Below are positions 53,782 through 55,481 of a stretch of 64,000 nt of DNA, piece after piece. Under the pieces are notes generated by a model, which saw only the letters and a program-made list of their open reading frames with translations, did not search any database and was not told the origin of the DNA. The position numbers and the translations under genes were made by a program. The stretch lies in sequence record NC_027399.1, one strand, 5' to 3'. Within the stretch, counting starts at the first letter, position 1. Each line of letters starts with the position of its first letter.

Positions 53782-53832
53782 GGATGATTATAAATCTGAA
53801 TTGACAGAAACAGCTAAAACTGTTATTATCCT
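53782..53832 (+). ncRNA. 50-nt tRNA-like mini RNA, copy 1
   Basis: GGATGAT/ATTATCC, TCTG/CAGA, AACAG/CTGTT; covaries with copies 2 and 3. Confidence 0.75.
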
Positions 53833-53839
53833 ATTTTAT

Positions 53840-54024
53840 TCCACAATCAGACGTATATGGTGTAAGTTACGTCGATGAAATCCAGAACAAGATCTCTGGT
53901 ACTCTAGGAAGTGGTGAATGTTAACCTAGACGGGTTTGTTAATTGGACGATAAGCAATTAATACTTGACTAGCAGGTTTAAACTAGAGGTGACTGTCCTT
54001 CACTAAACTGGAAAACCGGGTGGA
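53840..54024 (+). ncRNA. small RNA D (~185 nt, multi-hairpin)
   Basis: TCCAC/GTGGA closing stem; GACGT/ACGTC, CCAGA/TCTGG, CTAGG/CCTAG, TTAATTG/CAATTAA, CTAG/CTAG, GTGA/TCAC stems; no ORF. Confidence 0.55.
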
Positions 54025-54079
54025 CTTTTAATTAAAAAAGTGTTGAACAAAAAGTTCAATAATGATATAATAAGTACCA

Positions 54080-54155
54080 ATGTAAGGCGTGGAACAATGT
54101 TTACATAAGTTACTTAGTAGCCTGTACGCCCCACGTCAAGGTAGCCGAAAGGCAA
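54080..54155 (+). ncRNA. small RNA C
   Basis: starts right after promoter 54043-54071; GGCGT/ACGCC or CGTGG/CCACG stem; GCC-GAAA-GGC GNRA hairpin. Confidence 0.45.
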
Positions 54156-54162
54156 GTTTAAT

Positions 54163-54213
54163 GGGTGGTTATAAATCTGAATTGACAGAGACTATTAAAA
54201 CAGTCACCATCCA
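54163..54213 (+). ncRNA. 50-nt tRNA-like mini RNA, copy 2
   Basis: GGGTGGT/ACCATCC, TCTG/CAGA, GACT/AGTC, then A and AATTTTAATTT. Confidence 0.75.
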
Positions 54214-54235
54214 AATTTTAATTTAATAGTTTAGT

Positions 54236-54379
54236 ATGAATAAAAAACAGATACATAAACAATATGATGAAATTGCAGTGAAGGTTTTTCGTGGTGAATT
54301 AGGTTATAAACCATCTGTTAAATCTAAATATTCAAAATCTTCTTCACTAAAGTTCAATCATAAAATAGAGTTTAAATAA
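54236..54379 (+). CDS. small basic hypothetical protein (47 aa, not in ORF track)
   Basis: open frame MNKKQIHKQYDEIAVKVFRGELGY...; weak RBS. Confidence 0.35.
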   Translation: MNKKQIHKQYDEIAVKVFRGELGYKPSVKSKYSKSSSLKFNHKIEFK

Positions 54380-54398
54380 TACTGGACAATAATATATA

Positions 54399-54863
54399 AT
54401 GAATATCACTAATGTAAAAGATTTTTTAGAATATTTTATTAAGAATACTCGTGCACGTGATGAATTAGAAAAGAATGGATTCATCCAAGGTAACGATTAC
54501 AGTAATTTCTTTTATAGTATTGATAAACATGAATATTATGTCGATGCAACTTTAAGTGATAATCCATATTATATAAAAGATGGGTATTGCATTGGATTTA
54601 CGTTTGAAGATAAATCAGTAGATGCACCAATAAACTTTTATGCATTATATTATAATAAAAAAGATAATATTTTGAAATTAGGATTTACTAGTGACATGGA
54701 TGAAGATGTTGTATTCAATTGTAACACATGGTTGGAACATGATTCATTCTTTCAAAGTACATTAATTCATAACTTTATGACAACAGATTTAGAGTACTGG
54801 AAAAATTGCATAGAATTACTTAATGTAATTTATAATGAACAAATCAAACAAAAATGGCAATAA
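54399..54863 (+). CDS. FQxS-motif family protein
   Basis: WLEHDSFFQSTLIHNFMTTDLEYWKNC. Confidence 0.7.
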   Translation: MNITNVKDFLEYFIKNTRARDELEKNGFIQGNDYSNFFYSIDKHEYYVDATLSDNPYYIKDGYCIGFTFEDKSVDAPINFYALYYNKKDNILKLGFTSDMDEDVVFNCNTWLEHDSFFQSTLIHNFMTTDLEYWKNCIELLNVIYNEQIKQKWQ

Positions 54864-54960
54864 TAGCAGGACGGTTCAGTATTTGGTAGTATGTTTGGCT
54901 GAATAAACGTGTAAAAAAGTGTTGAACAAAAAGTTCAGTACTATATAATTGACTTACTAC

Positions 54961-55034
54961 GTCCCCTTAGTTCAGTTGGATAGAACAACTGCCTTCTAAG
55001 CAGTAGGTCACTGGTTCGAGTCCAGTAGGGGATA
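54961..55034 (+). tRNA. tRNA-Arg(TCT)
   Basis: GTCCCCT/AGGGGAT, D arm GTTC/GAAC, ACTGC-CTTCTAA-GCAGT, ACTGG-TTCGAGT-CCAGT; CCA lies 2 nt past the discriminator. Confidence 0.93.
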
Positions 55035-55047
55035 TACCATACAATAT

Positions 55048-55071
55048 GGGAATAGTTAGAAGATATTCCCA
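55048..55071 (+). other. acceptor-like microhelix
   Basis: GGGAATA-GTTAGAAGA-TATTCCC+A followed by the same ATTTTAATTT trailer as the RNA genes. Confidence 0.3.
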
Positions 55072-55186
55072 ATTTTAATTTAAAAAGCGTTGAACAAAAA
55101 GTTCAATAATGATATAATGGTATTATAAAATGTTGTAATACTTAATATTAACTTTTAAGAAGATAATTAGTATCATACACAAATTT

Positions 55187-55273
55187 AGTGAGTTGGATGA
55201 GTGGTTGAAATCACCACCCTGCTAAGGTGGCATATGCGAAAGCGTATCGTGGGTTCGAATCCCACACTCACTG
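55187..55273 (+). tRNA. tRNA-Ser(GCT)
   Basis: AGTGAGT/ACTCACT, CCACC-CTGCTAA-GGTGG, long variable arm, GTGGG-TTCGAAT-CCCAC, G73, no encoded CCA. Confidence 0.93.
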
Positions 55274-55334
55274 TAAAATTCAATTAAAAAAGTGTTGAAC
55301 AAAAAGTTCAATGCTGATATAATAAAAGAATAAC

Positions 55335-55422
55335 GGAAGGATGGCCGAGTGGTTTAAGGCACTGGTCTTGAAAACCAGCAATCCGAAAGGGTTCTAGAGT
55401 TCAAATCTCTATCCTTCCACCA
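55335..55422 (+). tRNA. tRNA-Ser(TGA)
   Basis: GGAAGGA/TCCTTCC, CTGGT-CTTGAAA-ACCAG, variable arm, TAGAG-TTCAAAT-CTCTA, A73, CCA. Confidence 0.93.
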
Positions 55423-55430
55423 GATTTTAT

Positions 55431-55481
55431 GGATAGTTATAAAGTTGAATTAACAGCGACACTTAAAATTGTCACTATCCA
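55431..55481 (+). ncRNA. 50-nt tRNA-like mini RNA, copy 3
   Basis: GGATAGT/ACTATCC, GTTG/CAGC, GACA/TGTC, then A and AATTTTAATTT. Confidence 0.75.

Follow-up and report, generated by a model that had tools for sequence, protein, structure and literature searches.

A 50-nucleotide element shared by unrelated phages may hold a promoter and a selected RNA three-way junction in the same bases

What keeps a sequence at exactly 50 nucleotides (nt) when it stands at three separate places among the tRNA genes of one phage? The question is raised by a 64,000-nt stretch of sequence record NC_027399.1 (here called the window), whose region under study is 100% identical to Klebsiella jumbo phage K64-1 (Alcyoneusvirus); positions below are those of the window, and adding 124,000 gives the record coordinate. 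The three copies lie on the + strand at 53782-53831 (copy 1), 54163-54212 (copy 2) and 55431-55480 (copy 3). An earlier note on this DNA had described them as a gap-free family of tRNA-like mini RNAs and had taken them for tRNA mimics; we confirm the coordinates, the strand and the gap-free alignment (mean column identity 89%), and we find the mimic reading unsupported. Tentatively, as the best of several readings rather than a settled one, we propose that the 50 bases of the element serve twice, as a sigma-70-type promoter and as a selected RNA three-way junction, and that together they make up a portable cassette for the boundaries of transcription units. The RNA motif is new; the types of signal are already known, and this is not a new kind of system.

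The minimum-free-energy fold is the same in every copy, namely a 7-bp closing stem, a 6-nt junction strand UAUAAA, a 4-bp hairpin with the loop AAUURA and, abutting it, a 4/5-bp hairpin with the loop YUAAAA. In copy 1 these parts are the closing stem at 53782-88/53825-31, the junction at 53789-94, hairpin 1 at 53795-53808 and hairpin 2 at 53809-53824. Folding energies range from -9.7 to -12.9 kcal/mol (z-scores -2.4 to -3.4), and the reverse complements fold differently and less consistently. A covariance model of the three copies recovered the same three alone from the window at 75-79 bits, the next best match reaching 14 bits, and a second model detected no copies beyond these in the whole K64-1 genome (346.6 kb). 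The core 20-mer has three exact occurrences, and up to three mismatches yield six matches where 0.95 are expected. Rfam held no match for the element at the gathering score, at E<=10 across 52900-56500 or at E<=1 in four homologous loci, in agreement with the earlier note, which knew of no described family.

From BLAST and covariance-model searches we collected homologues in 12 distinct versions, each exactly 50 nt long with zero insertions or deletions. All RaK2-like phages carry the element, in three copies apiece, and the 121Q-like Asteriusvirus phages of E. coli and Salmonella hosts carry one copy apiece. Searching related jumbo phages with a covariance model, as had been proposed, returned homologues with compensatory changes, and the element was also found, again in one copy apiece, in a group of Klebsiella podophages that are unrelated to the jumbo phages, have genomes of ~50 kb and belong to the Citrovirus type: Klyazma, Asterion and two metagenomic contigs. 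Pattern scans of IMG/VR, GTDB representative genomes and JGI metagenomes gave no further true members; their extra matches score 9-31 bits with the covariance models and are chance A/T-rich matches. Nothing similar that would point to a host origin was found among 5,426 complete E. coli genomes, and a covariance-model search detected no divergent members in the tRNA arrays of the Morganella, Erwinia and KP2025 phages that also carry RNA-B or RNA-C, the conserved non-coding stretches on either side of copy 1. Because similarity between podophages and jumbo phages ends exactly at the ends of the element, because tblastx between the complete genomes of Klyazma and K64-1 leaves the element as the sole detectable similarity, with no shared partner protein, and because KpnP_VR7901, a close relative of Klyazma, is without it, the element is, judged from these comparisons, a discrete, optional and horizontally exchanged module.

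Across the 12 distinct sequences, 96.4% of cells hold standard pairs. Double-sided changes occur at 6 of the 16 pairs, with pair 31-40 seen as AU, UA, GC and CG, and the covariation score was reached by 0 of 500 shuffles. When the 3' partners are shifted by one to three columns, pairing falls to 30-59%. Between copy 2 and the copy of Salmonella phage SD-6 there are exactly six differences, and together they make up the three partner pairs 14/27, 31/40 and 32/39; the chance of six random positions forming three partner pairs is ~560 / C(50,6), roughly 3.5e-5 by hand arithmetic. G.U pairs are found at 3-48, 5-46, 15-26, 29-42 and 32-39, and because these five positions would be A.C mismatches on the - strand, the folding strand is +, which is also the direction of all surrounding genes. 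The pattern of covariation shows that the element has been selected to fold as a single strand, the + strand, and the compensatory base changes and selected RNA structure that had been read from three copies hold over the larger family. We also observed that positions 22 and 33 are never A.C (G-C in five sequences, G.U in four, A-U in three); a tertiary loop-loop contact, in which U20U21R22 would pair with U34A35A36, is possible.

A second layer became apparent in the DNA. In a neutral promoter scan of a 4.5-kb region, the top match lies inside copy 1: a putative sigma-70-type promoter at 53801-53829 on the + strand, with TTGACA, a 17-nt spacer, TATTAT and a TG upstream of the -10 hexamer, matching at 11 of 12 positions. 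Its predicted start, at about 53836-53838, coincides with the beginning of the conserved RNA-C. In the family as a whole, positions 20-25 (-35) read TTGACA in nine of 12 sequences and TTAACA in three, while positions 43-48 (-10) read TATTAT or TATCAT in copy 1 and the podophages, TACTAT in EJP2 and CACCAT or CACTAT in the rest. Copy 2 accordingly has TTGACA at 54182-87 and the -10-like CACCAT at 54205-10, and copy 3 the -35-like TTAACA at 55450-55 and the -10-like CACTAT at 55473-78. Held at one fixed register, all 12 sequences match the promoter at 8-11 of 12 positions (mean 9.67/12), and an equal match was obtained in 17 of 20,000 column shuffles (p≈0.001).

The two layers meet in the pattern of invariance. 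A44 (-11A) and T48 (-7T) do not vary in the 12 sequences, the partner of T48 wobbling between G and A, and -14G is kept as well. Besides the G1G2/C49C50 clamp, the invariant stem pairs are 17-24, 16-25 (-31C/-30A), 30-41 (-14G), 7-44 (-11A) and 4-47 (-8A), and covariation falls on pairs made with -12, -10, -9 or ordinary spacer bases. This pattern fits two superimposed constraints, promoter contacts and RNA pairing. The junction UAUAAA would fall at the place of a proximal UP element, positions 9-13 forming an A-rich, UP-like tract. The fixed single-stranded letters, from which the idea of a binding partner had arisen, coincide with the features of a sigma-70 promoter (UP-like A-tract, -35, -14G, -11A and -7T). 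With sigma-70 phage early promoters (T7 A1-A3, lambda PL/PR and the phage's own TTGAAC-17-TATAAT) the element shares the -35 TTGACA, the 17-nt spacer, -14G, -11A, -7T, the A-rich upstream tract and a place directly upstream of genes or RNAs. It differs from them in that its whole promoter is embedded in a covarying three-stem fold, that many copies sacrifice -12, -10 and -9 to G-C pairing, and that its 5' strand (-54 to -48) exists only for pairing with the -10 region.

The surroundings of the copies are consistent with a promoter. The distance from the 3' end of the element to the downstream feature is 6 nt for RNA-C, 23-28 nt for open reading frames (ORFs) and 23 nt for tRNA-Arg. In 121Q, the RNA-C block is preceded by a canonical TTGACT-17-TATAAT promoter at the place of copy 1, and MAFFT aligns the two -35 hexamers. 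The podophage copies, with an 11/12 promoter, stand 28 nt upstream of the first early ORF; the predicted start gives a ~25-nt leader with a Shine-Dalgarno sequence before this ORF, and the copy is the last in a series of + strand promoter-like sites running inward from the terminal repeat. The annotation of Klyazma lists no RNA polymerase gene and only a putative sigma factor. The best -10 hexamers (copy 1, EJP2 and the podophages) are found where the downstream gene has no other promoter, and the single copy with a canonical promoter directly behind it is among those that match worst (8/12; copy 3 and the 121Q-type copies).

The K64-1 tRNA region reads, from its predicted signals, as a chain of short units. 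Unit 1 comprises PTH2, tRNA-Gly and RNA-B (53671-53781, +) and is followed by copy 1; unit 2 is RNA-C (53838-54030, +), then a promoter; unit 3 is RNA-X (54078-54162, +), then copy 2; unit 4 consists of ORFs, then a promoter; unit 5 holds tRNA-Arg and a plain hairpin, then a promoter; unit 6 is tRNA-Ser(GCU), then a promoter; and unit 7 contains tRNA-Ser(UGA) (55335-55422, +; promoter at 55295-55323), copy 3 and a promoter, with tRNA-Met and further genes next. The canonical promoter of the tRNA-Met unit, at 55502-55530 on the + strand, reads TTGACA-17-TACAAT, and its -35 and spacer also form a hairpin. It had been claimed that each copy follows an RNA gene: this is correct for copy 3, which begins 8 nt past the encoded CCA of tRNA-Ser(UGA), while copies 1 and 2 follow unannotated, conserved non-coding stretches instead. 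The third copy of a metagenomic RaK2-like contig likewise starts 8 nt past a tRNA CCA and, as copy 3 does, closes a promoter-to-tRNA unit.

The copies of K64-1 are followed by U-rich tails, all on the + strand: UAUUUUAUU after copy 1 (53832-53840), AAAUUUUAAUUUAAU after copy 2 (54213-54227), whose first 14 nt are those of the copy 3 tail, and AAAUUUUAAUUUAAA after copy 3 (55481-55495), which doubles as the A/T-rich upstream part of the next promoter. A plain 8-bp hairpin after tRNA-Arg (55047-55071, +; -9.5 kcal/mol), with AUUUUAAUUU next, occupies the same slot and has the same tail as copy 3. The sequenced 121Q-type copies have A4 before and A plus U6-9 after, a terminator-like arrangement, and the U-rich tails are strongest in this type. 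Where its stable closing helix is followed by a U-rich tail, at the end of a promoter-to-RNA unit and a few nucleotides past a tRNA CCA, the element is reminiscent of intrinsic (Rho-independent) terminators. Those are simple GC-rich hairpins, whereas this fold branches into a three-way junction; copies 2 and 3, moreover, have an imperfect tail, and the podophage and EJP2 copies have none. In the podophages a conserved extended -10-like motif, TGCTATCAT, lies 8 nt upstream of the element, and a start from it would place the 5' end inside the closing helix extended by 3 bp (GCC/GGC); KpnP_VR7901 has a simple GC hairpin at the element's place after the same conserved motif. That a promoter lies directly upstream and makes the element the primary 5' end is plausible in the podophages only, and we rejected it for the jumbo phages. 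Taken over all carriers, the RNA fold is always placed at what the predicted signals mark as a transcript boundary.

From these observations we propose the following mechanism. At the level of DNA, positions 9-13 would act as the UP-like tract, 20-25 as the -35 (TTGACA or TTAACA) and 43-48 as the -10, separated by a fixed 17-nt spacer, and transcription would restart ~7 nt beyond the 3' end of the element, for RNA-C, an early ORF or a tRNA downstream. RNA polymerase arriving from the upstream unit would transcribe the promoter itself, and the + strand RNA would fold into a compact three-way junction. Its 5' strand would pair with the transcribed -10 region, and two small hairpins would absorb the -35 flank and the spacer, compacting the 36 nt that promoter geometry imposes between the strands of the closing stem. 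For the RNA layer we infer two functions. In jumbo phages, the fold and the U-rich tail behind it most likely close the upstream RNA unit, as a terminator or as a hairpin at its 3' boundary; in podophages, where the element is at, or at most 3 nt from, the predicted start of the upstream extended -10 promoter, it is probably a protective leader structure at the 5' terminus. The fixed 50-nt length would then follow from promoter geometry, most invariant letters from promoter contacts and the covarying letters from RNA pairing.

Several observations weigh against this proposal. Copies 2 and 3 and those of the 121Q type have a poor -10 (CACCAT or CACTAT; 8-9/12), and their promoter activity may be low or nil; all the same they retain UAUAAA, AAUURA and UUAAAA. 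Nor does the promoter layer explain why U34-A35-A36 of loop 2 never varies, as these letters belong to the spacer. On the RNA side, the podophage and EJP2 copies have no U-tract, and termination is therefore not the universal role of the RNA; in the tails of copies 2 and 3 the U run comes only after an initial AAA; branched terminators are unusual, and a simple terminator scan, whose loop limit excludes such folds, made no call here. A terminator that released RNA polymerase past the promoter would, moreover, not stop promoter occlusion. We stress that both promoter and terminator activities are ones we infer from consensus matches only, and literature searches for transcriptomes or small-RNA reports on the carrier phages gave nothing relevant. 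Because the UAA of loop 2, the loops of the copies with a weak -10 and positions 22/33 are left unexplained, we keep a purely RNA-based reading in consideration and, at lower probability, a trans-acting RNA.

The former, which we regard as doubtful, holds that the element is a cis-acting terminator, processing site or end-protecting hairpin, and that its resemblance to a promoter is a functionless by-product of A/T-rich loops. Covariation proves selection on the fold, equivalent slots are filled by plain hairpins, and both the weak -10 of several copies and the conservation of loop 2 (UAAA) without a promoter rationale would be natural under it. It does not account for the rarity of an equal promoter match in the column shuffles, for the identity of promoter-critical bases with the invariant stem pairs or for the replacement of a canonical promoter by copy 1 before RNA-C, and the 19 near-invariant unpaired letters would be needless in a simple boundary hairpin.

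The tRNA-mimic reading would have the element excised as a tRNA is, by RNase P at G1 and by 3' trimming, to give a free ~50-nt RNA that imitates the acceptor/T-arm and engages, in trans, a host factor that binds tRNA, for instance as a decoy for a tRNA-targeting defence nuclease; we consider this unlikely. None of the copies matched the Rfam tRNA model (RF00005, clan CL00001) at the gathering score or at E<=10, where the seven true tRNAs score 52-70 bits. ARAGORN left the element uncalled in its bacterial mode and in its mitochondrial modes, which admit armless tRNAs (-mt, -mtmam), calls appearing only once the threshold was down at noise level, where 3.6 kb gives 92 'genes', and it found no tRNA in the scanned early-region stretches of the podophages. 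Both loops are hexaloops, loop 2 (YUAAMA) being without the T-loop consensus, and the element is followed by U, A or G and non-CCA sequence, while most of the phage's own tRNAs encode CCA. The pair G3.U48, which looks like an identity signal for alanyl-tRNA synthetase (AlaRS), is A-U in half of the sequences and flips between Klyazma and the otherwise identical L015; with G3/A3 polymorphic between near-identical phages, we rejected an AlaRS-type G3:U70 identity. The podophage copy, in addition, lies in a predicted mRNA leader, and the letters supposed to serve in recognition are explained by the promoter.

What remains of the likeness to tRNA is partial. The acceptor/T-arm geometry described in the earlier note stands in so far as the 7-bp stem abuts a 5-layer hairpin without a spacer, giving a 12-bp minihelix stack whose fifth hairpin layer is a standard pair in eight of the 12 sequences; the other tRNA features are lacking. 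The resemblance of the 3' hairpin to the anticodon arm of tRNA-Leu(UAA) extends to the stem of copy 1 only, the loop having 6 nt and not the 7 of an anticodon loop. The tRNA minihelix, the tRNA-like domain (TLD) of tmRNA and the T4 species 1/2 RNAs serve as comparison systems for acceptor/T-arm-like domains: with them the element shares 7+5 stacked pairs, the invariant G1-C50 closing pair, U8-A9 directly behind the stem and its place in phage tRNA arrays, here beside the PTH2 gene, and it differs from them in having no T-loop, CCA, D or anticodon features and no tRNA-model score. Further points favour a mimic. Unrelated phages of the same hosts share the element and no protein, so that any partner would be a host factor, and the element is optional (KpnP_VR7901), as anti-defence genes often are. 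Phage tRNAs are reported to counter PARIS and retron nucleases (PMC11464382, PMC11555353). U20U21R22 and U34A35A36, with 22/33 never A.C, could kiss in the manner of the D/T elbow. Put most specifically, a stable ~50-nt RNA would mimic the top half of a tRNA, acceptor/T-arm and elbow, and its invariant loops would engage a factor common to Klebsiella, E. coli and Salmonella, with a tRNA-directed defence nuclease or a processing enzyme as examples of such a factor; this version seems to us as unlikely as the general one. Were it true, the element would be a horizontally traded anti-host RNA.

We think it very unlikely that the element is a miniature mobile element of the REP or MITE kind, whose stems would be selected because a mobilising enzyme recognises them in single-stranded DNA, the promoter being cargo. 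Small palindromic elements such as Neisseria Correia and enterobacterial ERIC and REP sequences are short, dispersed and presence-polymorphic, have terminal inverted repeats, and combine promoter-like boxes with a hairpin that folds in the transcribed RNA. The phage element resembles them in its terminal inverted repeats, its multiple dispersed copies, its presence/absence polymorphism (VR7901) and its movement between unrelated phages without flanking homology. By comparison it is much smaller (50 bp) and phage-borne, at 1-3 copies per genome, and both the E. coli genomes and the GTDB representatives lack it. We saw no target-site duplications; the carriers share no transposase, HUH enzyme or other protein, no mobilising enzyme is known, and every copy is co-oriented with transcription.

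Small ribozymes occur next to phage tRNAs, and the size of the element, with a conserved core and variable stems, resembles small ribozymes and three-way-junction aptamers; that it is a new self-cleaving ribozyme or small-molecule aptamer, with the junction and loops as active site or pocket, is nonetheless most improbable, given that no Rfam ribozyme or riboswitch model matched at E<=10 (52900-56500) or at E<=1 (four homologous loci), that junction strands J2/3 and J3/1 have 0 nt, and that the promoter explains the conserved letters. A riboswitch was ruled out, there being no expression platform and the downstream contexts being heterogeneous. Equally improbable is a reading with incidental stems, in which the DNA is simply a promoter or operator, or else codes for a short protein: the promoter match, a frame open through all copies and the RefSeq hypothetical proteins over copies 1 and 2 speak for it, while three separate stems covary and G.U is tolerated on one strand only. 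Protein coding was rejected, variable sites being distributed 5/8/7 over codon positions 1/2/3 and an in-frame ATG occurring only in copies 2 and 3.

Further conserved features surround the copies. RNA-B, a non-coding stretch that lies after tRNA-Gly and has a 7-bp closing stem (AACAGGU/ACCUGUU), has ~88% identical counterparts in tRNA-array gaps of Erwinia phage Hena1 (L073:4001-4056) and Klebsiella phage KP2025 (L072:4001-4099). RNA-C, also non-coding, ~190 nt long and provided with its own canonical promoter in 121Q, is 92-95% identical in Asteriusvirus phages and in the T4-like Morganella phage vB_Mm5 (L071:4001-4187), where it lies among tRNA genes; its 3' end is a hairpin followed by UUUUAAUU. 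Neither RNA-B nor RNA-C has an Rfam match. RNA-X, non-coding and conserved with 121Q-type phages, lies between a canonical promoter at 54043-54071 and copy 2; the GCC-GAAA-GGC hairpin at its 3' end is found again ahead of the element in EJP2 (L052:2455-2495). Upstream of tRNA-Leu(UAA), at 53000-53135, is a structured-looking non-coding stretch with a long closing helix (UACUGAAUGAG...CUUAUUCAGUA) and no Rfam match.

Canonical promoters of the form GTGTTGAAC-AAAAA-GTTCAAT..TATAAT are found at 54034-54071, 54913-54949, 55081-55118, 55286-55323 and 55493-55530. Each contains an inverted repeat that pairs the -35 with the spacer (z-scores -2.2 to -3.4), and TTGACA/TGTTCA in K64-1 against TTGACT/AGTTCA in 121Q looks like a compensatory change; the repeat could be an operator palindrome or a transcribed hairpin. 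Among the ORFs of the array, one of 107 aa at 53258-53581 between tRNA-Leu and tRNA-Gly, matches the Pfam family PTH2 (peptidyl-tRNA hydrolase) at 27.2 bits (cut-off 23). Another, of 235 aa at 55638-56345, with tRNA-Met on one side and tRNA-Asn on the other, resembles HNH_3 weakly, at a score under the Pfam cut-off; RefSeq annotates it as an HNH endonuclease, and it is likely a homing endonuclease inside the tRNA array.

In the podophages, a ~500-nt non-coding region extends from the terminal repeat to the first early ORF (L003:711-1254 in Klyazma, L002:1000-1608 in Asterion). It is partly conserved among Klyazma, Asterion and VR7901 and contains the motif AATGCTATCATC twice; in Asterion it includes a T-arm-like GGTTCGATTCC without an ARAGORN tRNA call, and small ORFs are annotated there in the record. 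A different sequence of 54 nt, GGTAGGTTATAAAAATGAATTGACC..GATTATAAAATGAATGGTCACC, with an internal direct repeat, is identical in an Acinetobacter tandoii genome, a Bacteriovoracaceae metagenome-assembled genome and several metagenome contigs (L047:3611-3664, L049, L058, L060, L066, L068 and L069); it scores 16 bits and lies outside the 50-nt family.

For annotation, these results correct RefSeq, in which small hypothetical ORFs are annotated over copies 1 and 2, and they flag an unannotated cluster of conserved RNAs (RNA-B, RNA-C and RNA-X) in phage tRNA arrays. For covariation-based RNA discovery they carry a caution, as DNA signals can pose as invariant 'loops'. If the combined promoter and RNA junction is the right reading, a single 50-bp sequence would be held under two simultaneous codes and traded among unrelated phages of the same hosts, and this would offer a model, open to test, of the way in which phages fit 'stop here, restart here' signals compactly within their tRNA and small-RNA arrays.

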